The position numbers were made by a program, and so were the translations under genes. The notes under the pieces were generated by a model. It saw nothing but the letters and a program-made list of their open reading frames with translations. It made no database searches and was not told the origin of the DNA. 64,000 nucleotides of DNA from positions 1 to 64,000 of the IMG/VR virus record IMGVR_UViG_3300036853_000446; one strand, written 5' to 3'. Positions 9,107-59,798 of the stretch are shown piece by piece; position 1 is the first letter of the stretch, and every line of letters begins with the position of its first letter.

Positions 9107-9135
9107 CTCAAACCGCCTTTTGGATCCTGCTCACA

Positions 9136-18419: not shown

Positions 18420-22250
<3,831 letters not shown>

Positions 22251-42150: not shown

Positions 42151-43014
42151 TCAACCATTCAGATATCGGGCGGCCACACTCTCGACGAGCGGGTCGGCGG
42201 CAAATCGACCGTACTGCTGGCGCGGCTTGCCGCTGAGATCCTCAAACGTCCACAGTTCAACCTCGGCATCGCTCTTGTAAGCTCTGGTCTTCTGCTTCAG
42301 CTCCAAGAGACGCACCCTCTTTCGCTGGTTGCCCTTGCTGACGGCCATACCCTCGTCGCCCGGCTCACCTGGCCCCGCAATCTGAAGCCCCCAAGCTCCG
42401 CCGGGCAGCGCGCGATAGACACCCTCGAAAGCCGGAGTCGGCTTGGTCTTCTTGAGACCCGGCATCTTGGGTGCGGGCACTGAGGGAACACGTGCGGGCT
42501 CTTCGCGGGAGTTCTCCCTCTCCTCGCGAATCTCTGCCTCCTCCGCATCCTCGATCTCATGGTGCTCTCTAGGCGTCAGATCAGGCAGCGACTCCTTGAC
42601 CGCCTCATCCAAGGCATCCTCTCTGTCAGAGCCACCCCCGCCCGTGTTGAGCCGGCGCTCCTTCCAATACCCGACCTTGGATTCATAAATCTCCAACAGA
42701 TCCTCGATACGTTCCTGCAGAGCGTTGCGCCAGTTGGTCGTACGCATCACCAACTTGCTCGGTGGCATGAGCGCCTTGTTCTTGTCGGTCAGCATCACGA
42801 CCCTGATCGAATCTGAGCCCTTTTTCCGTACTATGCCGTCTCTAAAAATCGACGAATAGACACGGATGAAAATCTGGTGATTGTCACTGAGGCTCAGATG
42901 AAAGACCACCTGACCCTTGTAAATCTCCTTCTTTGGATGCAAGGCACGATAAGCCCTCTTGAGGAAAGCCTCCATATCCTCGAGCGTGATTTCGACGAAG
43001 CGACTACCAGCCAT
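42151..43014 (-). CDS. Hypothetical protein, 287 aa
   Basis: ATG at 43014 overlaps the helicase stop (preferred to track start 43095); globular N-terminus, acidic linker, C-terminal SVAARYL. Confidence 0.7.
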   Translation of the reverse strand: MAGSRFVEITLEDMEAFLKRAYRALHPKKEIYKGQVVFHLSLSDNHQIFIRVYSSIFRDGIVRKKGSDSIRVVMLTDKNKALMPPSKLVMRTTNWRNALQERIEDLLEIYESKVGYWKERRLNTGGGGSDREDALDEAVKESLPDLTPREHHEIEDAEEAEIREERENSREEPARVPSVPAPKMPGLKKTKPTPAFEGVYRALPGGAWGLQIAGPGEPGDEGMAVSKGNQRKRVRLLELKQKTRAYKSDAEVELWTFEDLSGKPRQQYGRFAADPLVESVAARYLNG

Positions 43015-46000
43015 TGTTGCCCCCGACGAACGGCAAATCATTGACGGTGTCGCGTCTATAGTCTTCGACGAAAACCGCGGCGGTCTTGGGTGCATTCTCC
43101 GCTTCTGCGCCGGGCACCGGTACGTTCTCTCCGAGAGTCAGACCAGCCTCGCCCAAGAACGGGCTCATTCCAGCTGGCTTTCCCCCGTACTCGCCAGGAG
43201 CCACCACCCTCAAATCCTTCGAGGCTCGGGTCAGCGCCACGTAGGCCAAGCGCCGGAACCCCTCGAGTTCACCATCCATCTCCGCCAAACGCTCGGGGGT
43301 CAACTCCTCATCCGGATCAACTCTCGGTATCATCGGAAACTTACCCTTGGTCATCTGCACCGTGACATAAGGCCATTGCGCGCCTTTGACGCTATGGACA
43401 GTCCCTAGAAATACCGCTGGTGGCGGCGTACCACCCTTCCACTTGTCCAGGTCGTAACTCAGCTCTTTCGAGCGCGCCCGCAGACGATTCATCTTTGCAA
43501 CGAAGCCTTGCGGCGTCTCAGGCGGGAAAGCCGAGTCCAACGGATCGTCGGGGTTCGGCTTTGCCAACTCGAAAAGAAATGACACGTTGCCGAGCCCGCT
43601 CGTAGCTACCGCCTGGTCGTCAACATCGCCCTCTTCGTCGTCTGCATCGTCGCTCTCCTCTCCACCAATGTCCTTAGCCGAAGCGGACAGTGACTCCCGA
43701 AAGGTCGTTGGGTTCTGGAGGAGCTTCCCCGTCTTCGGGTTGTTCTTCCACTCCATTCCCGGAACAGCCAGAACGGCGTCGAACAGCACCTTGGTGTTGG
43801 TATCCTCTTGCGTCGCAAGCATCCCGAGATCAGTCAAAGCAGAGGACAGGATCTCGAGCTGGTCGAATACGTAGTCTGGCGCCCCGGGACCCTTGAGTGC
43901 TTTGCCCAACTCAGTCCGAAACCGTGAATCCCGCATTGCGGCCACGGGGTTGACTTCCTTCATTGAAAGGCCAAAACGTCGTGCGTAGCTGTTTACAGCA
44001 GTATCCGTCGCAGCCTTAAGCTTCTCTGCATCGTTGATGTAAAAACGGTTGGGATTGTTGAGGATCTTTACGAACGCTTCCTGTGCCTTCTCAGCGTCGG
44101 TGTCCATCGCGAGTGTCACGTACCCCAAAAATGCCTCGGTCTCTCGCGATGATAGGAAGCTCGAGCTTCCCTTCCGGGCGTAGGGAACCCCCTTGATCAA
44201 AAGGGCAGTCTCGTAGGAATGCAGTTCGGCATTGGTGGCAGCCAAGATGGCATTGGATTCGGCAGGTACCCCCTCACCCCCCTCCCACCGGCCTGCGATC
44301 TCTCGCGCTACGGCGAGCGCGGTCGCGGCCTCATCCACATAAACCGAAGCGTTGACGCTAGCCTCGCCCTTAACCCTCTGAGGGGAAGCAATGGCTTCCT
44401 TATTCATTCGATTCTTGTTGTGCGCGATGAGCTTGTTGGCTGCCTCGATAACTTCAGGCGGACAGCGGTAATTGGTCCTTATGAGCCGCGTCTTCCAACC
44501 TGCGGCACCATCCAACGCGACGAAGTCTTCGGGGCGTGCACCGCGGAACGCATATATACTCTGGTCGGGGTCCCCGACCATCCAGAAGGACTTTCCATCG
44601 CTCCCGTCGGTGACCTGCTCGGTCATCAATCGAAGCGCGCGACTTTGGGACTTATTTAAGTCCTGACATTCGTCGACCATCACATGATCGTAGGCCTTCT
44701 GAGCGCGGCCACGAATGTCGGGGCTTCTTTCGAGGATGTCACCGAAGACCGCAATCATGTCGTCGTAGTCGCCGATGCGTCGAACCGACTTCCGACCCCC
44801 TTGGGTGATCGTTCGCATGTCGGTGATGAACTTATCGTACTGGTACTTGACGCCCTTGGCATCAGCACAATCCTGCGGGCGCCACGCGATCGACCCTTTG
44901 AGCCCCTCGTACATTTCGTACCATCGAGCGGCTTCCTTCTCCTTATCCGAAACGGCCCCCGCCAAGGCTTCCGCTGGGCTGATCCCGTTGGCGCTCCACT
45001 TCGTTTTGGCAAGCTTCATTGCCTTCGCAGGCGGAGCCTCAGCGTCATTGACCTTTCCCGTCAACTCGTCGACCGTCGCGTAACATTTACGCCAAATACG
45101 ATTGACGGCAGTCGCGGTCGGACCCCCAGCTAACTGTGGCTTGGTGAGCCCTACAAAGAGGGTCTTCTCTTGGGCATCCCCGTACTTGAGAATGGACCGC
45201 TGATAGAGGCTGTGCATCGTACCCACCTGCATCGCTTGGGCTCGATCCTTTCCCACGGCCTCAGAAATCTTGTGTTTCAGTTCGGCCGCCGCCTTCGCAT
45301 TGAAGCTCGTCACGAGAATGCGTGCTGGGTTGACCTTCCGCTCATCGACCAGGTATTTCACCCGGGCTACCAAGGTCGTGGACTTCCCCGCGCCGGCACC
45401 GGCCGCAACGAGAACGCGACCATCCGTCATGGCCGCGGCACGCTGCTCGAGGTCCAAGCCACGCAGCGACTCAGGAACATCGGCGTCACTAAGACTAGTT
45501 TTTGCGGCCGCCGCTGCAGCCGTGGCGATGCCGATAACCTCACTCCGGGTCGGAGGTGCGTCGTCCTCACCAGAGGTCTCGAGCACAGCACGGGCCGCTT
45601 CAGTAGCGTCGTTCTGAAGCTGCTCGAGAGCACCCGTTCTCTCATCCTTGGCTTCCTGAATGTCCTCTGCTTCTGTCCTGGTCTCCTCGGCTGCTTGTTG
45701 CGTCTTGAGCGTTTGAGTCTGGTCCACGACAGCGACGGCGGCCATTTCGACCGGGTTCTGAATGACACTCCCCGAGCCGATCGTTTCCTGAGCCGTCTTT
45801 ATCCAGTTCTTAATCCGGACGTTTCTGAGAGGCACCGTAACGTAATCCGCAAAAGCCTCTGCGGGTTCACTCAATACGTTCGCGGCGACACTGATCTTGA
45901 TAGCCCGGCGTGCACGAGGTTCCTTGAAGATGTCTGGCAAGTCCGTCGAACGATGGAGCGCCACCCGTAAAGCTAGTGCACGACGTCCGAGCTGCTCAAT

Positions 46001-46291
46001 ATTCGAGATTCGGACCCGAAAAGTCCGCGCCACCGTTGCCTTTGAGACTGGGCGTGTGAGCTTCTCGGCAAAGAAGTCACGAAGGCCGTCGCCATAGTTC
46101 GCGTCCGTGAGACGGACCAGATTGATTCCCTTGTGAATATGGCCGTCTTTGGCGTCTGGGTCGCCCATCTGCTGTTCGACGTAGAGCTTATATGAAGTGA
46201 TCGAGAGAAGCAGCACGACGTACTCGGCGACCTCGACGTCTCCGATCAAGTCATCGTCATCATCTTCATCAGCTAAAACTGGTTCGGCCAT
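43004..46291 (-). CDS. uvrD: UvrD/Rep/PcrA-family SF1 DNA helicase with ~275-aa N-terminal extension, 1095 aa
   Basis: All SF1 motifs seen: AGAGAGKSTTL, TSFNAKAA, GTMHS, DECQD, GDPDQSIYAFRGA, TNYR, TVHSVKG, RRLAYVALTRA. Symbol indicates family only. Confidence 0.92.
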   Translation of the reverse strand: MAEPVLADEDDDDDLIGDVEVAEYVVLLLSITSYKLYVEQQMGDPDAKDGHIHKGINLVRLTDANYGDGLRDFFAEKLTRPVSKATVARTFRVRISNIEQLGRRALALRVALHRSTDLPDIFKEPRARRAIKISVAANVLSEPAEAFADYVTVPLRNVRIKNWIKTAQETIGSGSVIQNPVEMAAVAVVDQTQTLKTQQAAEETRTEAEDIQEAKDERTGALEQLQNDATEAARAVLETSGEDDAPPTRSEVIGIATAAAAAAKTSLSDADVPESLRGLDLEQRAAAMTDGRVLVAAGAGAGKSTTLVARVKYLVDERKVNPARILVTSFNAKAAAELKHKISEAVGKDRAQAMQVGTMHSLYQRSILKYGDAQEKTLFVGLTKPQLAGGPTATAVNRIWRKCYATVDELTGKVNDAEAPPAKAMKLAKTKWSANGISPAEALAGAVSDKEKEAARWYEMYEGLKGSIAWRPQDCADAKGVKYQYDKFITDMRTITQGGRKSVRRIGDYDDMIAVFGDILERSPDIRGRAQKAYDHVMVDECQDLNKSQSRALRLMTEQVTDGSDGKSFWMVGDPDQSIYAFRGARPEDFVALDGAAGWKTRLIRTNYRCPPEVIEAANKLIAHNKNRMNKEAIASPQRVKGEASVNASVYVDEAATALAVAREIAGRWEGGEGVPAESNAILAATNAELHSYETALLIKGVPYARKGSSSFLSSRETEAFLGYVTLAMDTDAEKAQEAFVKILNNPNRFYINDAEKLKAATDTAVNSYARRFGLSMKEVNPVAAMRDSRFRTELGKALKGPGAPDYVFDQLEILSSALTDLGMLATQEDTNTKVLFDAVLAVPGMEWKNNPKTGKLLQNPTTFRESLSASAKDIGGEESDDADDEEGDVDDQAVATSGLGNVSFLFELAKPNPDDPLDSAFPPETPQGFVAKMNRLRARSKELSYDLDKWKGGTPPPAVFLGTVHSVKGAQWPYVTVQMTKGKFPMIPRVDPDEELTPERLAEMDGELEGFRRLAYVALTRASKDLRVVAPGEYGGKPAGMSPFLGEAGLTLGENVPVPGAEAENAPKTAAVFVEDYRRDTVNDLPFVGGNNGW

Positions 46292-46456: not shown

Positions 46457-49400
46457 TCAAAGCTTTGATCTGAGGTTGAAAGTGCAGACGATATATAGAA
46501 GCGGATATATAGGCATAAAAAATGCCTCGATCCTGAGTATCGTCGGATCGTCCGGATCCACGATCGCTGAGATACCGGTGAAGGCCCCGACGATCTCCGC
46601 TTGGACGAGCGAATTGAACATCGCGGTCAAGCTGATCTCCACGTCATTGGTGCGGCTCGCGAGGAACTTCGTGCCGATGTAGACGTCGAGAGTCGAACGC
46701 GCCGATTGCTGCACGAGGTCCGCGATCTGAGTCACGGTCGGGAGGCGACTCAAGATCGTACTCATGTCCGTCGTGAGCCCGTGTCGAATCCGCATTACGG
46801 GGGCGAGGTCCTCGAGCAGCGTCACACCGCTCGTCGCTGTCAGATTGGCCTCGACGGCGTCCAGGATGCGCGGCAGCCGCGTGAAGCCCTGGATGCGTCG
46901 CCGGGTGAACGGCGTCGCCACGTCGAACGCGGGGCTCACCGCAGACCCCGCCACGGCGGCAGCGAGGAACGTCCCGTCAACGAGCGTCTCGAAATTGTTC
47001 CCGAGTTCGTCCGTGAGAGTCACCACGGCCGAATCCGGGTAGATGGCGATGACGCGGTTTGACTCGATGCTGCGAGCCACGGTCTGGGCCGTCGTCGGTC
47101 CCGTCCCCGATGCGAACCCAATATAGGCCATCCGTTCCGACTGGTTGCGGATGGTCGACATGACTTCGACGTGCTGGAGCGTCGCCGAATAGATGGCCGT
47201 GCTGGTCGAGAGCGGCACGATGACGTCGGGCTTGACGTTGCCAGGCAACGGCTTTTCGAGGTCCTTGAGGGCCGTGAGAAAGGCGCGATCCGAGCCCTGG
47301 TTACTGCTCGCGGCCTTGAGGACCTGCTTGATGCCCACGAGAACGGCCCCGTTGAGGATCATGAGGAACGCGGCCAGCGTGACGCGATTCTCGCCGCTCA
47401 AAACGCCGAAATTCGCTTCGATCGTCTTGAACTGCGCGAAGAGGCGCGTCCCGAAATCCTGCTTCATGTAGTGGTAGGTAATGAAATAACTGTCGCCGAC
47501 CGCCGGCTCGAGTCCGCCCGGGTTGAATGTCTGGATGCTGGCGGTGTCGTTCAGGCCGACCCCGACCGTGTCTGTGACGATCAACTCGAGACCCGGCACG
47601 CTGAGGTACGCGATCGACGGACTCACTTTCCACGTCTGGGAAACGTCGAGCGTGAACGCTCCCGTGTCCGTGTAGGTGCCCACGGCGCTCGGGAGAACCG
47701 TGAAGCAGAGCCCTGTGCGGGCGTCCGTATAGGTCTGACCCGGGAAGCCCGTACCGGCGGACCCCGCGGGATTCGTCGAGGTGACGATGAAATCGTCCTT
47801 TGCCGCCTCCCCGTTGTCTCCGTCGCCCGGGGTAATCCCGATCCCCGTGGTCACGTTGAACGCCGAATTGCTGCCGTCGGCGAGCACGACGGTCGACCCT
47901 ACCCCCGTGTGGAGCGATTCGATCGTGATGAACTCGCGGTCGTCGATCTCATGAACCCAAGCGAAGGCTTCTGTCGTGAAGGCCGCAGGGTTCGACGTGT
48001 TCATGAGGATGTCGACGATCTCTTGCGCCGTGACGCGCGTTTCAGACACCTGAGAGCCCGTCGAAAAACCCAGCCTCGTGTTGGCCGAGCCCGCCTTGAT
48101 GAGCAAACGGCTATTCGAACCCGTAGTGGGGCTCGTCAGCCGTATGTGGTTCAGGTTTGATAGGGTGCCGACGGAGGCAAGACCCCCGACGACCGCGTTG
48201 ATGTCGGTCACGATCTGAGCCGCGGTCCTGCCGATACCAGCCGTCAGCGGAATGACGTACTCGACGCCGTCGACCTGCAGATTCAGCTGGTCGTTGACGC
48301 TCGCCGTAATGTCGATCGGCTCCGCCAAGCTGCCCACCAGAGTCGCGGGCTTGTTCGTGGCCGACGCCGTGCCCGAGGCCGACTGGAACGCTTTGAATCC
48401 GAGAACGGCTTCAACGGTGCCTGGACGAACCGAGACGACCGCGCCGTGGTCGAAACCGCCCGGCAACGCTTCGGGCGTCGTGACGGATTTGACGATGAAC
48501 ACGGCATGGCTCGAGCCGATCGAGACCGTCGATGCCAGGGTGGTCGCCCCGAAAACGGTATCGAACACGGCGTCCATTTCCGCCACGATCTCGGACGGGG
48601 TGCGCTCGCCCGGCGTCAGCGGGATGCTCACCTCTCCGTTGCCGCCCGTCATGCCGTGGACGATGAATCCAGAGTTGACGACCGTATCCGTGACGGCTTC
48701 GTTGCTGCCCTCTGCATCGGACGAGTCATTGATCAGAGGGACGAGGGCGCCCACCGGAGCCGACGCCGTGATGAGTAGCCCGTCCCCGACCCCATTGATG
48801 GCCGCCTCGATGGAGGCTGCGACAACGGCCTCCGAATCGCCACCCGTGAACGTGACCGTCACGTGCCCGGAACCAACGCCGGCTCCGCTGTCGAATTCGA
48901 AGACGGTGGGATCGTTGACCCCGTCGTCCAACGTGAAGGTCTCGCCCTCGATGAGCGACGCGCCGCCCACCGCCGTGATCGAGCCTTTGGAGGCGGATAC
49001 CGCGTCGCCAATGGTCAGCTCGAGGACGTTGCCCGGGGCGTCCGGGATCGTAATGTTGCCGCCCGAGAGTGCGACCTTTCTACTCACGAGATAGGCGGGC
49101 GAAGCCGTGCCCAGGTTGGCCACGAAGGCCGTCCCGTTGACCGTCACCCGGAACTGATCGGAGCTTCCCGAGTAGAGATCGTAGGGAGCTTGACCGTCGT
49201 TGGTGAATCGAGCGTTCGTGGTGGTCGTCGACCCAAAGGTCACCGTCACCGTCTCGTTGACGGGCGATCCGGCGCCCGTATGGAAGGCGTCTGGCACCTG
49301 CTCGGCGCCGCGCGGCCACTGGACGACTTCGGGCAGCCCCGCCTTGTTACCGAACCGCACCTGGAAGAGGTTCGTGCCCAATACCGAGCTGCGGACCTCG

Positions 49401-51058
49401 TACTCGCCGGACCCGAGGGCGCCTGACACCTTGTTCGTGAGCGTGCAGACGTCGTCCGTGATCCGGCTGTAGTTGTAGGTTGCGAAGACCGTCTGGTCCG
49501 GCGGCACGACCTCACGCACCTTGAACCGGAGCGTGGTCGAGTCGACCTCCACAACCGTCAGAGCCGAACGGCTGAGAGCGTCGTTGACGTTGCGCCCCGC
49601 CCAAGCCTGGACCAGGTCCGGGCGGTTGCTCGGGAGCGAAATGCGGCTATTGGAAACCGCCGCGTACAGCGTCTGCCCGAGAGGCGTATCCCGGCCATTG
49701 CCCGTTGTCGGGACTTGGGTCAGCACGAACTCGCTGTCGGCGATGAGCGCCGGCACGACGCCCGTATCCACATAGCGCTCGGTCGGAGCCATGAAAATCT
49801 TCTCGTCGACGAGCGTCGAGAGGATCTGAGTCGAGTTGAGGACGGTCGTGCCCGCGGTGTGGCCCGTATTTGCCACGCTGACCGACGTGCCCCAATGGAT
49901 GACCGAGACGTCGGCGCTCGGATTCTCGACGACGAAATCCTGTCCCTGAATGAAATCGCTACGTCCAGAGGCAAACCCGCACCGGACGACGTCCGTGACC
50001 AGAGTGTTGGGTAGGTAGTCGAAGGTGTCTTGCCACGTGTTGGCAAAATACTGGACGCTCACCGTTGCGCCCTGTGGCGGCGGTAGCGCGAGGGTCACGG
50101 TGCCGTTCGTGCCGTCAACGGCGATCGGGACCTTCTGCACGCCGTTGACGAGGACCGTCACCTTGGTCGTGTCGTTCGTCGTGATGCCGCCGTCAGAGCC
50201 ATCCACGATCGGGCGCTGGAAGACTCGGAAACTCTTGGCTCGGCTCGTCTTCTTGCCTTGGGTAAAACCGAAGACGCCGTTGGCTGAGCCGTTACCGATC
50301 TCGACTTCGGAGGCCGCGATCAAAGTCAGGTGGTCGAGCCCGCGGTTGTCGGTAAAGACGAGCGTGGCAAGGCCGGAAATGAGATTCGAATCGATCTCGA
50401 CCTTGAGCGCCGCCGCCGTGTAGGTCGCCGCGGCGAGCGAAAAGATGCGCTCCGTGCCGTCGATGATGACCGAAAGAATCGACGCGCTCGACGAGATCAC
50501 GAACGGCGCCGCCGCTGGCGACGTCAATTCCGCCCGAGTCGCCGTCACCTGGTCGGAGACCGTGTCGGTGAAGGCCGTGTCCGTCCGTCGGAAAAAATAC
50601 GTGACCCGGATGTCGTCGCCAGCCTGCGGAGGCACCTGCAGCGTGACGTAGCCGCCCACCCCCTGCACTGCCCCGACCGCTACCTGCAGGCCGTTGATGG
50701 AGACGCTGACCGCGCGCACGTCGTTCACGACGCGGCCGTAGCCATTGCCGTCGACAATGGGGAAATTCCGAACCCGGAGCTTCGTCACCAGGCCATTCGC
50801 GGCGCCCAAGGTGGGGTTGTTCGGATTCCTCTCAGCGAGGACAAATCGAACCGAAGCATTCTCGCTCAGGATCTGCTGGTCGAGATTCGCGCTCGAGCCA
50901 CGGATGTTCTCGAGGTTGGACTGGATGAGCTGCTCCTGTCCGACGCCAAGGATCACGGGGATGCGCAATCCCGCGACGAGATTTGCAGCGTTTGCCTCCG
51001 TCAGTGTGCGCGTGTACACGCCGGGAGGAACGTACGTCACCATCGGTCCGATAGCCAT
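46457..51058 (-). CDS. Contractile tail sheath protein, 1533 aa, with multiple inserted domains
   Basis: N-terminal YVPPGVYTR; C-terminal sheath core KPDVIVPL, QSERMAYIG, RVIAIYPD, TRRRIQGF, GVTLLE, IRHGLTTD, TVTQIADLV, EAFFMPIYPLLYI; strong AGGAG SD. Confidence 0.9.
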   Translation of the reverse strand: MAIGPMVTYVPPGVYTRTLTEANAANLVAGLRIPVILGVGQEQLIQSNLENIRGSSANLDQQILSENASVRFVLAERNPNNPTLGAANGLVTKLRVRNFPIVDGNGYGRVVNDVRAVSVSINGLQVAVGAVQGVGGYVTLQVPPQAGDDIRVTYFFRRTDTAFTDTVSDQVTATRAELTSPAAAPFVISSSASILSVIIDGTERIFSLAAATYTAAALKVEIDSNLISGLATLVFTDNRGLDHLTLIAASEVEIGNGSANGVFGFTQGKKTSRAKSFRVFQRPIVDGSDGGITTNDTTKVTVLVNGVQKVPIAVDGTNGTVTLALPPPQGATVSVQYFANTWQDTFDYLPNTLVTDVVRCGFASGRSDFIQGQDFVVENPSADVSVIHWGTSVSVANTGHTAGTTVLNSTQILSTLVDEKIFMAPTERYVDTGVVPALIADSEFVLTQVPTTGNGRDTPLGQTLYAAVSNSRISLPSNRPDLVQAWAGRNVNDALSRSALTVVEVDSTTLRFKVREVVPPDQTVFATYNYSRITDDVCTLTNKVSGALGSGEYEVRSSVLGTNLFQVRFGNKAGLPEVVQWPRGAEQVPDAFHTGAGSPVNETVTVTFGSTTTTNARFTNDGQAPYDLYSGSSDQFRVTVNGTAFVANLGTASPAYLVSRKVALSGGNITIPDAPGNVLELTIGDAVSASKGSITAVGGASLIEGETFTLDDGVNDPTVFEFDSGAGVGSGHVTVTFTGGDSEAVVAASIEAAINGVGDGLLITASAPVGALVPLINDSSDAEGSNEAVTDTVVNSGFIVHGMTGGNGEVSIPLTPGERTPSEIVAEMDAVFDTVFGATTLASTVSIGSSHAVFIVKSVTTPEALPGGFDHGAVVSVRPGTVEAVLGFKAFQSASGTASATNKPATLVGSLAEPIDITASVNDQLNLQVDGVEYVIPLTAGIGRTAAQIVTDINAVVGGLASVGTLSNLNHIRLTSPTTGSNSRLLIKAGSANTRLGFSTGSQVSETRVTAQEIVDILMNTSNPAAFTTEAFAWVHEIDDREFITIESLHTGVGSTVVLADGSNSAFNVTTGIGITPGDGDNGEAAKDDFIVTSTNPAGSAGTGFPGQTYTDARTGLCFTVLPSAVGTYTDTGAFTLDVSQTWKVSPSIAYLSVPGLELIVTDTVGVGLNDTASIQTFNPGGLEPAVGDSYFITYHYMKQDFGTRLFAQFKTIEANFGVLSGENRVTLAAFLMILNGAVLVGIKQVLKAASSNQGSDRAFLTALKDLEKPLPGNVKPDVIVPLSTSTAIYSATLQHVEVMSTIRNQSERMAYIGFASGTGPTTAQTVARSIESNRVIAIYPDSAVVTLTDELGNNFETLVDGTFLAAAVAGSAVSPAFDVATPFTRRRIQGFTRLPRILDAVEANLTATSGVTLLEDLAPVMRIRHGLTTDMSTILSRLPTVTQIADLVQQSARSTLDVYIGTKFLASRTNDVEISLTAMFNSLVQAEIVGAFTGISAIVDPDDPTILRIEAFFMPIYPLLYIVCTFNLRSKL

Positions 51059-51711: not shown

Positions 51712-52194
51712 CTAGGTCTCTTTCTTCATCGAAGCCGTCGAGATGCCCTTCAGCGGGGCTTCGATGCCATCTCGGACGGCCTTCTCTTTGAAGGTGACCT
51801 CGAGCTTCTTACGCGCGGCGAAGCTTCCCTGCGACAGCGTCGTGTATTCCGTGACGACCTGACCCTGCTCGACCTGGTCACGCCGCGCGAGGCCTACGCC
51901 AAGGCCACGGATCTTGTCTTTCGCTGCGTTGCGCTCGTGGATGATGTGCCACTGCGCCTCTGCCGAACGCCCCACGACGTTGTCCGCTGTCGGATAGTCG
52001 TGCTTGGCCACTCCCGAGTTCGCCCGCGCCGTCGCCGCCGTCTCGCAAAAGCCAAAGCCGAAACCCTGGCCTTCCCATTCTCGAGGGGCCCCCTTCTTAC
52101 AGCTCGGGCACTGACACGTCGCGTTTATGCCCATGGCGAGCCGCCGCTTGAACTGGAGATTGCAGGCGCCGCATCGAAACGTGTACTGAGGCAC
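51712..52194 (-). CDS. FmdB-family zinc-ribbon protein, 160 aa
   Basis: MPQYTFRCGACNLQF...CPSCKK matches MPxYxxxCxxC...CPxC. Confidence 0.8.
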   Translation of the reverse strand: MPQYTFRCGACNLQFKRRLAMGINATCQCPSCKKGAPREWEGQGFGFGFCETAATARANSGVAKHDYPTADNVVGRSAEAQWHIIHERNAAKDKIRGLGVGLARRDQVEQGQVVTEYTTLSQGSFAARKKLEVTFKEKAVRDGIEAPLKGISTASMKKET

Positions 52195-52558: not shown

Positions 52559-53701
52559 TCAGCCGATCCTCTCGAAGTCCGGGTTTCGCCCGGCGAGGAC
52601 GCCATAGGTGTCGTAGAAGGCCTGAGGCGCAACGGTCGCGATGCCCTCGGGTTCGATGTTGCTGATCGTGAGCGGCAGCGGGACGTGAATCTCCCAATCC
52701 GCCTGCAGCTGCACGGTCATCGTGGTCATGAACTGAAAGTCTTGACCCGTCTCGTCGATCGGCTCCTCGGATTCTCCACCCATCGATACGTCCGTTATCT
52801 CGATCCCCTCCCACGCGAGCACGGGACGCTTCTCGCCCCAGAGATACATGCTCACGAGGTCCGTAATTTCTTCGATCTGGGTCGAGTCCCTCGCGATGAT
52901 CTCTAGGTCGAAGGAAACCTCATGCTTTCCGCCGTAGGCTTGCGCCGCCTCGATTCGCTCGGCGTAGACGACGACGGCGGTCTTTTGCCCAGCCTCCGAG
53001 CGCTTCCCGAAGGCCAGGACGACGCCCGGGAGAGTCGTTGCGTCTGCCGTATTCCAGCGAAACGGAACGGGCCCTATCGACTCGATCGGGTATCGGTAGT
53101 CCGCCGTGATGTAGCTATCGGCGGCGAACGGATGCAGAAAGCGAATGCTGCCGTGTGTTCCGACTTCATAGTCGACACCGGCGTGGAGCATCATCGATCG
53201 GTCTTCGTAAAGTCGTAGGGTCCGCTCGAGCGGCACGTTCTGCAGCTGCCCTTCTGGCTCAAATCCGGTCTGGAATCGAAAAACCGGTTCGTTCGTCACC
53301 GTCCGCAAGGGGTCGATGATGAACGAGCCCGCCTCGCCCGGCGTCGTTGGCGCGCTCAGGATCTCGAGATAATAGACCCCCGGGGGCGTCTCGATGACCC
53401 CGCCATGGGCACGCACGGCCGCCAGGTCCTCTCGTACCCATTCGAGGGGGAATACCGACTCCGCGCCGATCTTCGCCAGCATGACGTGGCTCTGCACGGC
53501 GCCGATGAAATTCGAAGCGTCGAGCTGAATCTTGTTCGCGCTGCTGCCCTGCACGACGATCCCAAATTGCGGCCGCTCGTCGAAGGCGAACCGATTCTGA
53601 ATGAACGGGACGAGCTTCCGGTAAATCGGGTGCCGGCTGAAGCTGTCCTTCAGCTCGAGGATGAGCCGCCGCTTCAACGCGCCGATTAAATAATAGTACG
53701 T
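52559..53701 (-). CDS. Putative tail-completion/terminator-like virion protein, 372-380 aa
   Basis: C-terminal VSFDLEIIARDSTQIEEITDLVSMYLW resembles tail terminator folds. Track start is TTG 53677, but coding-like TYYYLIGA extends to an ACG at 53701. Confidence 0.5.
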   Translation of the reverse strand, partial: TYYYLIGALKRRLILELKDSFSRHPIYRKLVPFIQNRFAFDERPQFGIVVQGSSANKIQLDASNFIGAVQSHVMLAKIGAESVFPLEWVREDLAAVRAHGGVIETPPGVYYLEILSAPTTPGEAGSFIIDPLRTVTNEPVFRFQTGFEPEGQLQNVPLERTLRLYEDRSMMLHAGVDYEVGTHGSIRFLHPFAADSYITADYRYPIESIGPVPFRWNTADATTLPGVVLAFGKRSEAGQKTAVVVYAERIEAAQAYGGKHEVSFDLEIIARDSTQIEEITDLVSMYLWGEKRPVLAWEGIEITDVSMGGESEEPIDETGQDFQFMTTMTVQLQADWEIHVPLPLTISNIEPEGIATVAPQAFYDTYGVLAGRNPDFERIG

Positions 53702-53734: not shown

Positions 53735-54772
53735 TCAGCGGCTCGCGTGCTCATCCTGGGCGAGCACCAGCAATCCTTCGGCAACGGCCGTAAGCGGGTT
53801 CGGGGCTTGCCGAACCTCGCTGATCTGGATCGGAAACTTCTTACGAACCCGATCAAATTCCTCTTCGAAGATTTCCATGAACCCGCCCGCCTTGCTGGTC
53901 CCCCCGCTCACGATGAAGGGGATCGGCTCAGGCAAATCGACATTGTTGGCGACCCTCTTGAACTCGCTCGTAATGGCCTTGAAGCAATAATCGATGACGT
54001 TTCGGTAATACATGGCGAGCGCCTGCTGCTCTCGACCCTCGGGATTCTTTAGATCGATTCCACGCTCCTTGATGGCGCACATTTGCGAGGCCGTCTTGCC
54101 GATGGCTCGCCCCGCCTGCTGATCGATCCAATCACCGCCGGCCCTCGAAAGGGCGAATTCCATCCCAGAACTAGCCTGATACGCGAGCGCGATGTTGACC
54201 ATACCAGAACCAAAGCTCACGGCGAGGCCGCTGAATTTCTCCTGAGCGCATTGCGAAAAGATGATGGCCATACCCTCGTTCGTCGGTTGGCCCGAGTATC
54301 CGTGCTCGTCGAGAATCTTCCTGAAGACCTCGGTGTGATAAACGATGTCTTGGCCCGGGTTGTCGATCGGCTCTGCCGGCACGCTGTAGAAGCAGAACTC
54401 CCGGGAAACGCGCGGCACGCCAACTACTCTCTTGATCAACTGGCTGATAATCCACTGCGCGTCCAATTCGCCCGCGGAAATGACCCCTCGACTCAGAGGG
54501 CGCCGCACCTCCCGCTTGAAGAGGTTCGCCATCGTCAAGGCGCCCTCGCCAATGACGATGATATCGTCCGAGCCCTCCTTCTTGATGTAATCCACGTTGC
54601 TCATCCGGAGCGATCGTTTGGCGTCCGCCTCCAGATCCAGGAAGGCATCTCGGATCGAGATGGTCACAGTCTTCGCCTCCGATTTGCGTGCCGAAACAAG
54701 GTTGCCAGTGCCGATGTCTAACCCAACACCCAGGGGTTCTCGTATATCGTCGTTCTTCATCTTCATTTCCAT
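53735..54772 (-). CDS. Actin-fold ATPase (MreB/MamK/ParM-like), 341-345 aa
   Basis: Phosphate-1 GLDIGTGNLV; RPLSRGVI; YSVPA; connect-1 NEGMAII; phosphate-2 VSFGSGMVNIA; AGGDWID; adenosine IVSGGTSKAGG; connect-2 PLTAVAEG. Confidence 0.85.
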   Translation of the reverse strand: MEMKMKNDDIREPLGVGLDIGTGNLVSARKSEAKTVTISIRDAFLDLEADAKRSLRMSNVDYIKKEGSDDIIVIGEGALTMANLFKREVRRPLSRGVISAGELDAQWIISQLIKRVVGVPRVSREFCFYSVPAEPIDNPGQDIVYHTEVFRKILDEHGYSGQPTNEGMAIIFSQCAQEKFSGLAVSFGSGMVNIALAYQASSGMEFALSRAGGDWIDQQAGRAIGKTASQMCAIKERGIDLKNPEGREQQALAMYYRNVIDYCFKAITSEFKRVANNVDLPEPIPFIVSGGTSKAGGFMEIFEEEFDRVRKKFPIQISEVRQAPNPLTAVAEGLLVLAQDEHASR

Positions 54773-54794
54773 CTTGAGTCATACGGCGTTCAAA

Positions 54795-55490
54795 TCAACG
54801 CGCGTACTCGTACACCGCAGACTCTCTCTGCTGGAGCAGGTAGACGAAGGTCTCGTGGAGGTCTGCAACGCCCTGCAAGAGGTTGTCTGCGCCCGGCGTG
54901 AGGCTTTCGGTGGATGATAGAACGGAGAGCGTCTCATCAACGATCGCGAGCACGAGGGACTCCACCCTGAGGCTCGCCTTGACCAGATTTGCCGCGGAGG
55001 CGTCCGGGCTGGCGACGGCCCCAACCATCTGCGCAATCTGCTCGGCCTGACGCGACGGGGTGACCAAATCGGCCGACCCGAGCCCAACGGCCTTCTCCGC
55101 GACTTGATCGATGAATGACTGAGAATCTTTATAGAGGCGATCAAAAAGCAGGTGGTCGGCGTAATAGCTCGGCCCCGATGTCTGCCAATGATGGGTCTGG
55201 TGAAGGAACGAGGCCGCGCGAAGCACGGACAGCACGGCACTCAAGGGGCTCCCCTCTATGCCGCTCCCGAGGCCGCTCCCGATAAAACGTCGAGCCACCC
55301 GCGGGCTCACGTGAGCGCTGGCGACTCGTCGGACGACGGCCTTCGCCTCTCGTGCCATCCGGACGGGCATGTACGGAGGTCCGTGGCGGAGCGGGTCGTA
55401 TTTCGTCGGATCGTGCCAGACGACTTCGGTTCCCTCTTCTCGAGGGTTCGGAGCGGCGCTCTCACAGCCGCACGCCTTCTTCGGGGTCAT
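54795..55490 (-). CDS. Dps/ferritin-like protein with ~85-aa N-terminal extension, 231 aa
   Basis: HQTHHWQTSGPSYYADHLLFDRLY...IDQVAEK matches the Dps ferroxidase pattern H-W-x3-G...H-x2-F-x3-Y...D-x2-A-E. Confidence 0.8.
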   Translation of the reverse strand: MTPKKACGCESAAPNPREEGTEVVWHDPTKYDPLRHGPPYMPVRMAREAKAVVRRVASAHVSPRVARRFIGSGLGSGIEGSPLSAVLSVLRAASFLHQTHHWQTSGPSYYADHLLFDRLYKDSQSFIDQVAEKAVGLGSADLVTPSRQAEQIAQMVGAVASPDASAANLVKASLRVESLVLAIVDETLSVLSSTESLTPGADNLLQGVADLHETFVYLLQQRESAVYEYAR

Positions 55491-55513
55491 GCCCCGGGCG
55501 GTCCATCAAAACA

Positions 55514-56179
55514 TCAGGCGGATTTGCCGCGCAGAGATCGCAGCGCCGCGACGGCTTCGTCGAGGTTGCTGATCGACGTGCCTTCCCTGGGATTGATCCG
55601 CACTTCGGCAGCCTCTAAAGTCGTCGGCGGAATGAAATGCGGAACGGCTGCGGCCGTCCGTGCCGGACCGCCGATCCAGGGTGCACGGAACTGTGGGGGC
55701 TGAGGGACCGGGCCCTGGCGAAGAGTCAGCGTTTCGACGGCCCGCTGAATGTTCCAGAGCTGCTCGGTCATGGTGGTCAGAGTCCCCTGCAGCGCCTCGT
55801 TCAGAGCCTGCAGACGCCGGCACTCCTCCCGGCTCGCCTCTAGCTCGACGACCAGGGCCTCCCTCTCCCCCCAGGAGGCCGTCGAAGGCACCACGTCGGC
55901 CTTTGGCGCGGGGACGAAGGGGGCAATCCCTCGACCTCGAAGACTCGGGTTCAGCTGAGGGACTGACTCCTGCTTCATGACCATACCACCCGTGCCACTC
56001 CCCATAACGCTACCGAGTCGCATGACCCGTCGCTGCTGCAGCGCCTCGACGAGGTCCTGCGACCGTTCGGCAAGATGCGCCGGGATCTGGATTGGCACCC
56101 GCTGCGGAACGGTCGTTCGAATGTCCTCGAGATGGCACCCCCCTTGGACCAATCCAATGACGGTGACACCGCCCGTCAC
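55514..56179 (-). CDS. Hypothetical coiled-coil protein, 221 aa
   Basis: GTG 56179 overlaps the upstream TGA (GTGA), preferred to track start 56311; heptad-like ELEASREECRRLQALNEALQGTL. Confidence 0.65.
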   Translation of the reverse strand: MTGGVTVIGLVQGGCHLEDIRTTVPQRVPIQIPAHLAERSQDLVEALQQRRVMRLGSVMGSGTGGMVMKQESVPQLNPSLRGRGIAPFVPAPKADVVPSTASWGEREALVVELEASREECRRLQALNEALQGTLTTMTEQLWNIQRAVETLTLRQGPVPQPPQFRAPWIGGPARTAAAVPHFIPPTTLEAAEVRINPREGTSISNLDEAVAALRSLRGKSA

Positions 56180-56691
56180 CGCTGCGCCTTTGCCAGCCCA
56201 ATGCGAATTTCTCGACGGAACTCCTTCGCCAGTCGCGCCATGATCACCTTGCGTGTCTCCACTCGCGCCTTCTCGAGGATGGTGGTTGGCTTCCTCTGAG
56301 GATGGTACCACGAGCCGTTTTCCATCGATCTCGGGGTGGCGTTGCGAAAGATGAGTTTACCCTCGTGCGTGATGATGGGGATGGGACGCTGCGCCTTCAC
56401 GAGCCAGCGCATCTGTTGGTGCTTGCGGCCCTCGAGAAGGGGCCGAAACGCCGGGTGCTTGGCGACGACCGTGATGCTGTGAGGGCCACGCCGGATCTCG
56501 AAACCGTTGCACAGGGCGGTCTTCGCTCGATGTGAGAAGGTACTCTGAAGGATCCGGCTCTGAAGTTGTTTGACGATCTGACGTTGAACGGACTTCAAAA
56601 GTCTCGGGACGTTGACCTTCTCGAGAGCCCCCGGTGGGAGAAGGGGCTTCAGGTTGATGCGCGCGACTTTGACGTTGGGTTGCTGGTACAT
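56176..56691 (-). CDS. Basic putative neck/tail-completion protein (HK97 gp10-like), 171 aa
   Basis: Very basic; SWYHPQRKPTTILEKARVE resembles the gp10-type HPG-x-P-x-x-F/L motif; position fits. Confidence 0.45.
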   Translation of the reverse strand: MYQQPNVKVARINLKPLLPPGALEKVNVPRLLKSVQRQIVKQLQSRILQSTFSHRAKTALCNGFEIRRGPHSITVVAKHPAFRPLLEGRKHQQMRWLVKAQRPIPIITHEGKLIFRNATPRSMENGSWYHPQRKPTTILEKARVETRKVIMARLAKEFRREIRIGLAKAQR

Positions 56692-56695
56692 AGGC

Positions 56696-58048
56696 TCAGT
56701 AGGTCAGATTCTCCCAGGTCTTCGTACGCCCGCGGAGTTCCCGCTCGTTCGGGATATTCGGTTTCGACGTCTCGACGACCGGCGACAGGCCGGGTGGCAA
56801 CACCTGCTCGACGGTGAGCCCCTGCAAGTTGTCGATGGGAAGCCTGTACCGGATGTCCTTCTCGTCGATGTAGCCGATGTTGAAATGCTGTTGAAGAATC
56901 ATCCCGCGGTTCGTCGGCATGCGCACCGGCCCTATCGAGTACCGCTCTCCGTTGATGCGAACGATGAAATCCCGTTGGCTCAAGAGAGGCGCTGGCCCCG
57001 TCCAAACGTCCATGACGTGCTCCAGGTTTCGCCCTCGCGCCGTTTGGTTGATGCGGCGCTCGGCGTCGTCAGGAGCGAACACGATCGCGTAAGGCCCCTC
57101 GTAGCCCCGCAGAATTCCTGTCCCATAACAGTCGGGGCAGTCATTGAGTGGCTGCTTGTGCGTCTCGTATCGCACGCACGAGCACGGCTCGCCCACGGTC
57201 TTCCGGATGTAAACCAGACCGCGTTCGCCCCCCTGTTGCAAGATCCATTGGTTACGACGGACCGCCTCGCGCCAGATCCAGTCGACCTTCTCGATCTCTT
57301 TGGAATTCGTCATGGCCGCCCGCTCGAGCGGCGTCTCGCGAATCTCTTCGACTCGAATCACGTCAAGGTCCGCCCGTATGGGCACCCCAACCGTGGTCAC
57401 GCGGTAGAAGACCCGCGTGCTCAGGTCCGTTCGAACGAGGGTGTTGTTGTACCGATAGCTGACTCGGACAACGGTCGACTCCGCGGGGACCGGCGACGGG
57501 ATCATCTTCTGAGTCGCCACGTCCGGAAACTGGCGCGTTTCGATCTCGATTTCACCCGTCTCGCCGACGACCCTCTTGATGTGCGCGGGCTCCCCATCGA
57601 TGGTGACCCGCACCTCGGCAATGTTCGCCTCCGCAAACGCCTGTGAACCTGCGATGACGATCGGCGATCGCAGCGTCCGGAACACGTAGCGAGGGGGATT
57701 CGTCTCGCTGCCCGCGGCTTCTCCCCGCAAGACCCATTGCGAGTCTTCCACCACTTCGTCGACCACGATGACGTTGTCCGTGCGGTCGCGGTAGAAGCGC
57801 GCGCCGACGGGCAGCTCAGTCAGACGGTAGTAGGGGCCAAACTCGCTGTCGAAGCTCTGGTAGACATTGACCCCCAAGATGACGAACCTCGAATTCGCCG
57901 TCAAAGACGCCGGGTCATCCCAACAGAGGTCGAAAATCCCTGGCTGGTACCCGCTCGTCAGGAACAGGTTCAACGGCGGCACGGGGTACGCCGGGTTTTC
58001 CAGCTCTAGGTCGTGGGGGCTTCGATCCCGTTGCGAGGCGTATGGCAC
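56696..58048 (-). CDS. Putative head-closure/neck protein with FN3-like N-terminus and Zn finger, 450 aa
   Basis: GEPCSC...NDCPDCYGTG; C-terminal DFIVRINGERYSIGPV resembles head-closure beta-barrels. Confidence 0.5.
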   Translation of the reverse strand: MPYASQRDRSPHDLELENPAYPVPPLNLFLTSGYQPGIFDLCWDDPASLTANSRFVILGVNVYQSFDSEFGPYYRLTELPVGARFYRDRTDNVIVVDEVVEDSQWVLRGEAAGSETNPPRYVFRTLRSPIVIAGSQAFAEANIAEVRVTIDGEPAHIKRVVGETGEIEIETRQFPDVATQKMIPSPVPAESTVVRVSYRYNNTLVRTDLSTRVFYRVTTVGVPIRADLDVIRVEEIRETPLERAAMTNSKEIEKVDWIWREAVRRNQWILQQGGERGLVYIRKTVGEPCSCVRYETHKQPLNDCPDCYGTGILRGYEGPYAIVFAPDDAERRINQTARGRNLEHVMDVWTGPAPLLSQRDFIVRINGERYSIGPVRMPTNRGMILQQHFNIGYIDEKDIRYRLPIDNLQGLTVEQVLPPGLSPVVETSKPNIPNERELRGRTKTWENLTY

Positions 58049-58553: not shown

Positions 58554-59798
58554 TCATCCCACCAGCTTACACCAATTTGCCACACAGCTGACGATGGCAG
58601 CAGGGTCCCGTACAAATTCTGATTCCCAGATCACTAGACACTCAATTCCAACCTCCAAAAATGCGTCGATGACCTCTTGCTCGTGCTCCCAGATATCTTT
58701 CCCTGTAAATGCCTCCGAATGCCAGTAGTCGCCGAAGACTTCCACTACCTTCCTAATACCCCGATTGGCTAGCACGACTTCTGGCCCCGGCAGAACGAAG
58801 TCAGGGTTCTTGTGACATTTCAGCTTAGGAAGCCATACCCAATAGCTTCCATCACCGGTATATAGAAGCTGCGTCAAACACTCGGCGAAACGACGTTCCA
58901 GCCCGTTTGGACCCGGACGCCTGAAGTCCTTCCAAGCCGCTCGTGCCACCTCTGCATTTTGCATGGCATATGGGACACCGTATCGCGCAATCGAAGTCTT
59001 CTTAGCCTTATCATGAATGACTGGATTCTGCAGCGGGTGAGTCACCCCGTAACGCACCAAACACGTCTGCTCTCGACGTTGCTGCACCTGCAGGTTTTGA
59101 AGGGGACTACAAACGCCATATACCTTCAAACAGGTCGTGCGCATCTTGTCGACAATTTCAGCAGAAGCTGACGGCGCGGGACCGCCAAATCGTAAGATGC
59201 ACGTTGCCCTTCTCTTACTAATAGCACCCGGGATTGCACCCGTAGCTTCCACTCCGTACCTAAGTAAGCACGTTCCTCTCAGCCGGACACGGATCTCTTC
59301 CGATTGCAACGGGCTCGACACACCGTAGTTGATTTTTAGCGTGGCTACCTGACGTGCCTTTGTCTCCGATACTCGCATCGGATTTGCATCTCCTTTAGGG
59401 AATCTTCCTCGTTTCGGAGCGCGCTTCCTTTCAATGCTCTCGTACAATGGTGACTCCTTACAGAAGACATTTTCAACGCCATACTTCGTTTTTAGAGTCA
59501 ACTTACGCCGCTCTTCCAATCCCGGAATTTTTCGAAAAGATTCAGTGCCGTACCGCTCTAAGAGCGTTGCTTTCTGCCGAACACTCTGGACATCCCTACT
59601 GCGCGATAGCCATACCGAGCAACACTTGTGATGGCTCGCCATCCGACTTTCGTTAATAGCCGCGAACCCACACAGGCAATCCCTTGGGGTCAAATCCCCG
59701 AGAACAAGCTTCCAACCGCTACAGACGGCTTTGTGGCGTGAGTTTATACTGTCGGAGTTTGGGAAGTGCTTTCGACAGTGTGGACAGGTAACCGGCAT
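58554..59798 (-). mobile_element. Free-standing homing-endonuclease-like gene (Zn fingers + KxTxLxRYG repeats + Vsr/DUF559-like PD-(D/E)xK nuclease), 414 aa
   Basis: N-terminal CPHC/CLCG; about 7 repeats such as KATLLERYG, KLTLKTKYG, RGTCLLRYG, EQTCLVRYG; C-terminal NPDFVL...VVEVFGDYWH...IWESE; GC about 47% in a counted 60-nt sample, well below the flanks. Confidence 0.8.

Follow-up and report, generated by a model that had tools for sequence, protein, structure and literature searches.

A volactin-family actin-like ATPase with a candidate adaptor gene at a conserved position in huge soil phages

Gene composition of the locus

The analysed window is a stretch of 64,000 nucleotides from a 407-kb IMG/VR phage contig from soil. 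Three tightly packed genes lie on the minus strand at positions 53735–56179. The first encodes an actin-like ATPase of 345 aa (53735–54772), the second a Dps-like protein of 231 aa (54795–55490), and the third a protein of 221 aa with a long central helix (55514–56179). The gaps between the three genes are 22 and 23 bp. The 221-aa gene has a GTG start that overlaps the stop of the preceding gene in a GTGA. Hence, the observation made in the sequence-only reading, that is, an actin-fold ATPase gene co-oriented and tightly linked with a Dps-like gene and a gene for a presumed coiled-coil protein, holds.

The gene preceding the cassette (56176–56691, minus strand) encodes a conserved 171-aa protein, which had no hit in Pfam, PHROGs, NCBIfam or the PDB. 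Next to it lies a gene for a 450-aa protein (56696–58048, minus strand). ESM-Atlas structural neighbours of its cluster include T4_neck-protein, Phage_HCP and Phage_H_T_join_2, and weak PHROG virion-protein hits were obtained at E 0.001–0.007; thus a neck or head-completion function is only a lead. Directly downstream of the actin gene lies a gene for a 372-aa protein (52559–53677, minus strand), whose ESM-Atlas look-alikes are SP10_terminator, Phage_tail_terminator_9, E217_gp29 and T4-gp15. Its assignment as a tail terminator or sheath stabiliser is likewise only a lead. Profile searches against the PDB gave nothing significant for the 372-, 450- and 171-aa proteins, and Pfam searches with their divergent orthologues gave nothing useful. 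Further downstream are a 160-aa zinc-ribbon protein (51712–52194, minus strand; Pfam Zn_ribbon_8, E 2.6e-6, below the curated cut-off) and a 1533-aa sheath-like protein with large insertions (46457–51058, minus strand). The sheath call is weak: the C-terminal 400 aa of 4 of 8 orthologues hit Phage_sheath_1C with the best E of 5e-4, no PDB sequence match was found in profile searches, and the N-terminal PGVY-type start and the sheath-like C-terminus are our own reading of the sequence. The tail-module context as such is solid, as genes for a baseplate wedge, a tail fibre and a baseplate hub lie in the same window. The earlier placement of the cassette among neck and tail-completion genes is therefore well supported for the tail module, whereas the neck and terminator labels of the immediate neighbours rest only on the ESM-Atlas look-alikes.

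The actin-like ATPase

The 345-aa protein is a full-length member of the Pfam Volactin family (PF25216; E 3.6e-69, 234.2 bits against a 35-bit cut-off, model positions 3–321 of 321). The search for homologues returned 1159 proteins at E<=1e-5, of which the 120 best all carry PF25216, and 985 clusters at 50% identity with E<=1e-3. No hit to the Pfam MreB/Mbl model (PF06723) was obtained at E<=0.1, and only faint sub-threshold hits were seen in a few relatives. There was no Pfam HSP70 hit. A phmmer search against PDB sequences gave no hit at E<=1, including MreB chains, and PHROGs and NCBIfam gave nothing. A scan of genome contigs with an alignment of closer homologues found only MAG contigs and no haloarchaeal volactin.

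The motifs noticed in the sequence-only reading are present, RRPLSRGVISAG at residues 90–101 and FYSVPAEP at 128–135. So are the phosphate-1 motif GLDIGTGN (17–24), the phosphate-2 motif SFGSGMVN (186–193), GGDWID (212–217), the adenosine motif VSGGTSKAGGF (288–298), and PLTAVAEG (326–333). The ATPase motifs are invariant across 29 homologues, with D19, G21, T22, G188, G190, D214, D217, G290 and G291 kept in all of them. The AlphaFold2 model is confident (pLDDT 89.9, pTM 0.88) and has the two-lobed fold of actin/Hsp70/sugar-kinase (ASKHA) ATPases. Foldseek gave 670 PDB matches at E<=0.001, led by actin-like proteins. The best matches are the filament formers MreB, MamK and BeeR at TM 0.62–0.66, with DnaK-NBD lower down the list. 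In a viral structure library the nearest models are Hsp70 homologues, including closterovirus HSP70h and p65.

Among 150 representative clusters of the wider family, 21 have inteins in the phosphate-2 motif, and about 10 have a ParB-type HTH fused to the volactin domain. Three representative clusters are tandem double-volactin proteins. Inteins at this site are a sign of a constrained active site, and the tandem proteins are a sign of self-association.

The Dps-like protein

Matches of the single Dps-like sequence are weak: Pfam Ferritin (22 bits against 24.5) and NCBIfam DpsA (29 bits against 300) are below the curated cut-offs, and the PHROG hits (phrog_3636, phrog_858) are also weak. In contrast, a profile of 8 orthologues matched Dps chains of the PDB at E 1.8e-11 over profile positions 61–218, that is, across the whole four-helix bundle. 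All five ferroxidase positions, H101, H113, D/E117, D128 and E132, are kept with the 12/4/11/4 spacing, and four of them are invariant in the 8 orthologues. The protein has an N-terminal extension of about 60–85 aa with a conserved W-x-DPT-x-YDPLRHGPPYLP, which is not covered by the match to the PDB chains. The extension contains the motif PPYMP (55365–55379, minus strand; residues 38–42), in which P38, P39 and P42 are invariant in 8 orthologues.

The candidate adaptor

The AlphaFold2 model of the 221-aa protein consists of a small N-terminal domain (residues 1–56, pLDDT about 90), a disordered linker, one 52-residue helix (103–154, pLDDT above 90), and a C-terminal helix (206–218). A coiled coil, as proposed in the sequence-only reading, is plausible on the basis of the long helix alone. 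No known family or fold matched the protein: Foldseek against the PDB gave the best E of 0.32, and ESM Atlas the best score of 0.79 with no named family. The N-terminal domain is modelled with four short strands and two short helices, and no DNA-binding fold was found among these weak matches.

The N-terminal head of this family is variable, whereas the C-terminal module is conserved. The module comprises a P-x-[FY]-I-P peptide, PHFIP in the window (55628–55642, minus strand; residues 180–184), followed about 25 residues later by an amphipathic basic helix LDEAVAALRSLRG (55526–55564, minus strand; residues 206–218). I183 is invariant, F182, P180 and P184 are nearly invariant, L213 is invariant, and R217 is invariant within the close clade. 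Loci carrying homologues of the actin gene are designated by L numbers. An HMM of the module recovered the 207-aa and 211-aa partners of loci L001 and L016 at E 1e-6 and 1e-7. Its first hit outside the clade, at E 0.022 among 2534 ORFs, is the gene immediately upstream of a volactin gene in an unrelated bacterial (Anaerolineae) MAG (L021). The partners in L036 and L038 also carry the module. An HMM of the N-terminal domain did not reach L001 or L016 and reached L025 only at E 0.61. A profile search with the mixed partner alignment added almost nothing beyond the close clade.

The pattern P-x-[FY]-[ILM]-P occurs twice in the 44 genes (20,119 aa) of the window, and both matches, PHFIP and PPYMP, are in the two genes next to the actin gene, where the expected number is 0.012. 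This value is inflated, as the motif was defined after it had been seen. The motif is conserved in the orthologues of both proteins.

Conservation of the gene order and phylogeny

The block of the 450-aa gene, 171-aa gene, partner, Dps, actin, 372-aa gene, zinc ribbon and sheath-like gene is kept in 8 full loci at 56–63% actin identity. At 43–50% identity the order is the same without Dps. The Dps-like gene is present only in the subclade with 56–63% identity (L004–L010, L015 and L023) and is not part of the conserved core. The 171-aa gene is syntenic in all clade loci, the 372-aa gene is syntenic down to 43% actin identity, and the same zinc-ribbon family is called in L035 and L038. A partner with the conserved C-terminal module lies just upstream of the actin gene, directly or with Dps between, in every clade locus that reaches that far. 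More distant viral relatives (L014, L002) carry the actin in other contexts, not next to recognisable virion genes.

In a quick tree the phage proteins form their own supported clade, distant from the sampled cellular volactins, rather than falling inside a host housekeeping clade, a placement that, with no conserved linkage to virion genes, had been named in the sequence-only reading as weakening the cytoskeleton model. Repeat searches found no iteron, tandem or centromere-like array in or beside the cassette, only short two- or three-copy repeats at chance level inside coding sequence, and the intergenic gaps are only 22–57 bp. A promoter and terminator scan was at chance level.

Interpretation

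The interpretation offered in the sequence-only reading, an actin-based phage cytoskeleton or assembly scaffold with the 221-aa protein as adaptor, is partly supported. The complete actin-fold ATPase of a huge phage, the similarity of its fold to MreB and MamK, and the conserved linkage to the 221-aa gene and to the terminator-like and sheath-like genes are supported, and the adaptor idea gains real support from the conserved C-terminal module. However, the protein belongs to the already named Volactin family rather than to MreB or MamK, Dps is not part of the conserved core, and phage-encoded actins with an upstream adaptor are already known (AlpAC of prophage CGP3, PMC4446434).

We tentatively suggest that the 345-aa protein is an ATP-dependent, filament-forming volactin made together with the neck and tail genes. 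In this view the 221-aa protein would be its adaptor: the C-terminal module would dock on the actin, the long helix would pair two adaptor chains, and the fast-evolving N-terminal domain would hold a phage-specific cargo. Because the pair has stayed between the neck-like genes and the terminator-like and sheath-like genes over deep divergence, we take the cargo to be a virion assembly intermediate, such as filled heads or necks, which the filaments would gather or move late in infection. Since the N-terminal domain matches no known fold, the cargo is a guess. In one subclade the Dps-like protein, whose family assembles as dodecamers, would be a second, multivalent client or an anchor of the filaments. 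Family membership, fold, intact ATPase motifs, conserved gene order and the conserved partner module are established by the analysis, whereas polymerisation, docking of the partner, the cargo, the cytoskeletal function, and the shell formation and DNA binding of the Dps-like protein are inferred. Filament formation is suggested by the nearest solved structures, by the tandem members, and by the founding volactin, which forms dynamic filaments in vivo (PMC10869688). The AlpA/AlpC pair of prophage CGP3 is a precedent with the same logic, an upstream, co-transcribed adaptor and an actin. Position in a structural module is weak evidence of function: all genes in the 64 kb share one strand, and a UvrD helicase and a homing endonuclease sit in the same run.

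Other explanations were considered less likely. The same filament and adaptor could have DNA as the cargo, in a ParMRC- or AlpAC-like system that positions or segregates replicating phage genomes or maintains the phage as a plasmid-like episome. Volactin dynamics resemble ParM, the related haloarchaeal salactin helps partition DNA (PMC10869688), ParB-type HTH fusions occur in the family, AlpAC ties phage DNA to filaments through an upstream adaptor, and Dps proteins bind DNA. Still, this is unlikely given that no repeat array was found, that the pair sits in the virion module and not with replication or lysogeny genes, and that the ParB-HTH fusion whose context was read is in a cellular genome in a different branch; the adaptor's N-terminal domain is modelled as beta-rich and matched no ribbon-helix-helix or HTH fold, though its best Foldseek match was only E 0.32. 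Somewhat more doubtful is a non-polymerising ATPase that acts as a chaperone for neck or tail joining, as the Hsp70 homologue of closteroviruses does for virion tails, with the 221-aa protein as a co-chaperone or substrate. The fixed position between neck-like and terminator-like genes, the closterovirus look-alikes and the fold shared with Hsp70 nucleotide-binding domains are consistent with it. However, the protein has only 345 aa and no substrate-binding domain, the Pfam HSP70 model was not hit, the best solved-structure matches are filament formers, the family founder polymerises, and the tandem members suggest self-association.

Two further possibilities seem very unlikely. A host-takeover factor that co-assembles with, or poisons, the host actin-like cytoskeleton to change cell shape or size for a very large virion would agree with the fold similarity to MreB, with the effect of volactin on cell shape in Haloferax (PMC10869688), and with the existence of bacterial members of the family. 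Against it are the 15–18% identity to MreB structures without a Pfam MreB match, the distance of the phage clade from the sampled cellular volactins, and the dedicated partner with a phage-specific head, which argues for a self-contained system. A structural component of the virion, such as part of a collar or an internal body packaged with the Dps-like protein, would agree with the position in the virion gene block, and the motif shared by the two neighbours could equally be a targeting signal for a capsid or neck site. But the fully conserved ATPase motifs and the inteins in the active site point to an enzyme that cycles nucleotide, no virion protein family matched, and more distant viral relatives carry the gene outside virion modules. 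Membership in MreB, MamK, Hsp70 or the tubulin/PhuZ family and an adjacent parC-type centromere were rejected on the evidence given above.

A broader reading, which remains possible but unlikely, is that huge soil phages run their own actin cytoskeleton as part of the virion morphogenesis programme, and that the volactin filament is read by a family of adaptors through one short docking module, P-x-[FY]-I-[PD] plus a terminal amphipathic basic helix. The same module may then be the missing volactin-binding factor in bacteria and archaea, and the Dps-like protein, with the motif on the N-terminal tail of each subunit, would serve as a multivalent organiser or anchor.

Literature searches found no description of an actin in huge or jumbo phages, and the only characterised phage actin they turned up is AlpC of a small prophage. 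The only phage cytoskeleton studied in depth is the PhuZ tubulin spindle of nucleus-forming jumbo phages. An actin that is a fixed late-module gene of a widespread clade of roughly 400–530 kb phages, for which we know of no cultured relative, would be a second, independent way for very large phages to organise the infected cell. Volactin was named only in 2024 and no partners are known; the C-terminal module offers a short candidate volactin-binding peptide. The inteins mark this gene as a frequent intein target, which may be of practical interest.

Comparison with known systems

MreB, MamK and BeeR are the nearest solved folds, and the MreB-like motifs RPLxxGVI and GGDxxD are present; however, the identity is only 15–18%, and the gene is not a housekeeping one. 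PhuZ is also a phage-encoded cytoskeletal NTPase proposed to organise infection in a large phage (PMC7950403), but it has the tubulin fold, and no evidence of a phage nucleus was seen in the 64 kb of the 407-kb genome analysed here. ParMRC type II partition systems (also Alp7AR and AlfAB) share the logic of an actin-like filament plus an adaptor whose C-terminal tail binds the actin, to which the conserved C-terminal module of the partner may correspond. Here the adaptor gene lies upstream rather than downstream, no adjacent centromere repeats were found, no ribbon-helix-helix domain was detected among weak structural matches, and the actin family is different.

The AlpC/AlpA pair of Corynebacterium glutamicum prophage CGP3 comprises a phage-encoded actin-like protein and a small adaptor encoded upstream in the same operon (PMC4446434). 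The partner gene described here is also upstream and co-oriented, separated by a 23-bp gap plus Dps or directly adjacent to the actin gene in the Dps-less relatives. AlpAC are early genes that tie phage DNA to filaments and aid replication. The present pair lies in the neck/tail block of a roughly 400-kb phage, no DNA site was found nearby, and no DNA-binding fold was recognised in the adaptor among weak structural matches.

Volactin (VolA, HVO_2015) of Haloferax volcanii belongs to the same Pfam family of actin-fold ATPases of about 330–345 aa. It forms dynamic cytoplasmic filaments, and its authors expected as-yet unknown binding factors (PMC10869688). The protein studied here is encoded by a huge soil phage in a virion gene block, falls in a separate phage clade, and has a dedicated upstream partner gene; no cell-shape role is implied. 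The Dps-like protein shares with Dps proteins, including phage Dps-like genes, the four-helix-bundle ferritin fold and all five ferroxidase positions, and differs in the conserved N-terminal extension and in being fixed next to an actin gene.

Gene content of the locus

The window matches an IMG/VR contig of 407,634 bp at 100% identity, and this DNA occurs in soil metagenome runs. Every long ORF in the window lies on the minus strand. The cassette picked out in the sequence-only reading is indeed present and is formed by three close-packed genes: the 221-aa gene at 55514–56179, which has a GTG start overlapping the stop of the preceding gene, the 231-aa gene at 54795–55490 and the 345-aa gene at 53735–54772. 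The gaps between them are 23 and 22 bp. The three products are further referred to as the partner, the Dps-like protein and the actin, respectively.

The actin-like ATPase

The 345-aa protein matches the Pfam family Volactin (PF25216) over the whole model (234 bits, E 3.6e-69, cut-off 35). No match to MreB_Mbl or HSP70 was found at E<=0.1, and phmmer produced no hit to any PDB chain at E<=1. The phosphate-1, phosphate-2, GGDxxD, adenosine and C-terminal PLTAVAEG motifs are invariant or nearly so in 29 homologues. The AlphaFold2 model, built using 27 sequences, is confident (pLDDT 89.9, pTM 0.88). Its best solved structural neighbors are MreB, MamK and BeeR, with TM of 0.62–0.66 and 15–18% identity, whereas crenactin, actin, DnaK-NBD, EutJ, ParM and FtsA rank lower. 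Hence the interpretation in the sequence-only reading is supported in part: the MreB/MamK-like actin fold proposed there is right at the level of fold, but the family is volactin. The founding member of this family, HVO_2015 from Haloferax volcanii, forms dynamic filaments that span the cytoplasm and behaves more like ParM than like MreB; its authors expected unknown binding factors (PMC10869688).

Distribution and domain architecture of the family

A word-indexed search yielded 1159 proteins at E<=1e-5. The best 120 of them all carry PF25216, and many are encoded on contigs of 200–470 kb. An exhaustive search yielded 985 clusters at 50% identity with E<=1e-3, of which 301 have E<=1e-30. Among GenBank phages only two records match, both being uncultured phage genomes, of 485 and 595 kb. 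The viral structure library contains no close model and offers only Hsp70 homologues and phage G gp506.

The 150 best representative clusters were examined for inserts and fusions. Twenty-one of them (P0121, P0124, P0128 and 18 other representatives) have an insert of 141–450 aa at query residues 186–211, in the phosphate-2 motif; the homologous site in the window is 54140–54217. All three inserts that were scanned contain an intein splicing domain with a LAGLIDADG or HNH endonuclease. The gene in the window has no intein. Three representatives (P0125, P0140 and P0142) are proteins of about 730 aa consisting of two volactin domains in tandem. About 10 carry an N-terminal ParB-type HTH, and one is fused to a Wzz/GNVR/ParA-like module.

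Cellular members of the family exist as well. They were found in Hyphomicrobiales MAGs, where the neighbors are metabolic genes, and in an Anaerolineae MAG (locus L021, 5396–8215), where the volactin gene is flanked upstream by a 185-aa protein ending in the same C-terminal module as the phage partner (see below) and downstream by a GvpL/GvpF-DnaJ fusion, which hints at a link between volactin and gas vesicles. In locus L033 (5555–10676; a 247-kb contig from JGI 3300022554 with cellular context) a bacterium carries, in a row, a 403-aa coiled-coil gene, a plain volactin of 336 aa and an 891-aa ParB-HTH-volactin fusion.

Conservation of the gene neighborhood

We compared the gene order around the actin gene in the loci of its homologues. 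In loci with 56–63% actin identity (L004, L005, L006, L008, L010, L015 and L023), and in the partial loci, the order is as follows: the genes for a 450-aa and a 171-aa protein (g450 and g171), the partner, Dps, actin, the gene for a 372-aa protein (g372), a Zn ribbon, and a protein of 1400–1500 aa. In loci with 43–50% identity (L001, L016, L035 and L038) the order is the same, but Dps is missing. In a quick maximum-likelihood tree the syntenic group (12 rows) is supported at SH-aLRT 99, and together with the L001 group it forms a 19-row clade supported at 97. The cellular proteins from Hyphomicrobiales lie far away from this clade. Contigs of the clade with the full neck, actin and sheath synteny (L016, L017 and L023, from genome assemblies) are binned into MAGs labelled uncultured bacterium, Betaproteobacteria and Lysinibacter sp., which is either mis-binning or a hint at the hosts.

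More distant viral relatives show other neighbors. In L014 (36% identity; an IMG/VR contig of 210 kb) these are an amidase and, directly following the volactin gene, a protein with a mitochondrial-carrier repeat (8982–9593; PF00153, E 2.9e-10). The latter is unusual for a phage, and so this contig may be from a virus of eukaryotes. In L002 (27% identity) the neighbors are PKD-domain proteins and a nuclease.

The window is clearly a tail module, as it contains a baseplate wedge (E 8e-21), a collagen-like tail fiber and a baseplate hub. The tail-fiber protein (18420–22250, minus strand, 1276 aa) has many PHROG tail-fiber hits, and its gene coincides with the GC peak of 0.68. The 1533-aa protein (46457–51058, minus strand) is probably the sheath, given that four of eight orthologues hit Phage_sheath_1C, although the best E is only 5e-4. 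By eye, its N-terminal start and C-terminal domain are sheath-like, in which case the middle would consist of large insertions; the relatives range from 1414 to 1665 aa. In the ESM Atlas, g372 has tail-terminator look-alikes and g450 has neck or head-completion look-alikes, but neither label was confirmed by Pfam or PDB profiles. Other genes are interleaved with these. A UvrD/Rep-type helicase (43004–46291, minus strand, 1095 aa) lies directly downstream of the sheath-like gene, so that DNA-metabolism genes are interleaved with virion genes, and a 414-aa homing-endonuclease-like gene (58554–59798, minus strand; DUF7487, phrog_3339) lies in a low-GC patch (0.546) inside the run of neck-like genes. 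The latter is absent at that spot from most related loci, whereas L004 has a related copy directly upstream of its actin gene. Therefore position alone is not proof of function.

The 221-aa partner

The partner family evolves fast. The word-indexed search found only 26 proteins, and identity falls to 25–30% where the actin is still about 60% identical. The AlphaFold2 model comprises a small N-terminal domain (residues 1–56, pLDDT about 90), a disordered linker, one long helix (103–154), a disordered stretch, and a C-terminal helix (206–218). No fold or family matched. The conserved part is the C-terminus, which consists of V-P-x-[FY]-I-P (180–184 in the window protein) and, about 25 residues later, [DE]-A-x-x-A-L-[RK]-x-[LVM]-[RK].

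An HMM built for this module recovered the 207-aa and 211-aa proteins of L001 and L016 at E 1e-6 and 1e-7. These are therefore true homologues, even though BLAST detected no similarity. The first hit outside the clade, at E 0.022 among 2534 ORFs, is the ORF immediately upstream of the volactin gene in the Anaerolineae MAG. The partial ORF upstream of the actin gene in L036 (45% identity) hits the module at E 1.5e-5. The 196-aa partner in L038 (43% identity) hits only at E 0.023 with the original HMM, and at 2e-8 with the iterated one. By eye, the genes upstream of volactin in loci L022, L024, L025 and L033 have the same layout (variable head, coiled coil, [FY]-I-[PD]-P, terminal basic helix), but this similarity could not be made statistically firm. 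A variable head combined with a conserved tail is what one expects of an adaptor whose tail binds the conserved actin.

The Dps-like protein

A profile of eight orthologues of the 231-aa protein matches Dps chains of the PDB at E 1.8e-11 across the bundle, and the five ferroxidase positions are kept. The protein has a conserved N-terminal extension, W-x-DPT-x-YDPLRHGPPYLP, and this extension contains P-P-[FY]-[LM]-P. The pattern P-x-[FY]-[ILM]-P occurs only twice in the 44 genes (20,119 aa) of the window, one match being in the Dps-like protein and the other in the partner, whereas about 0.55 matches are expected window-wide and 0.012 in these two genes. In related loci the pattern is again almost confined to these two families. 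However, the pattern was defined after it had been seen, and hence this is a lead rather than a test. If it is real, the two proteins share a docking site.

Possible mechanism

In our best reading, the locus encodes a volactin filament with an adaptor, made together with the neck and tail genes. In this view the adaptor tail would bind the filament, whereas its head would bind a phage-specific cargo, which we take to be a virion intermediate from the deep conservation of position. Dps would be a later-added multivalent client. The family assignment, the predicted fold, the conserved gene order and the conserved module of the partner follow from the analysis itself, while polymerization, binding, the nature of the cargo and the timing of expression are inferred.

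The same machine might instead have DNA as the cargo. This is favored by the ParB-HTH fusions elsewhere in the family, the AlpAC precedent and salactin, but repeat searches revealed no repeat array nearby, and the structural search with the partner model yielded no DNA-binding fold. Other possibilities considered are a non-polymerizing assembly chaperone, a modifier of the host cytoskeleton, and a component of the virion.

Comparison with known systems

In the literature searched, which was incomplete, we found no paper mentioning an actin homologue in huge or jumbo phages. The 345-aa protein is a new, phage-borne branch of a family that has already been named, and the logic of a filament plus an adaptor, inferred here, is known from ParMRC and from AlpAC. 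What seems to be new is threefold: a volactin as a fixed gene of the virion block in a widespread clade of huge phages, the conserved module of its partner, and the Dps-like protein with a matching motif.
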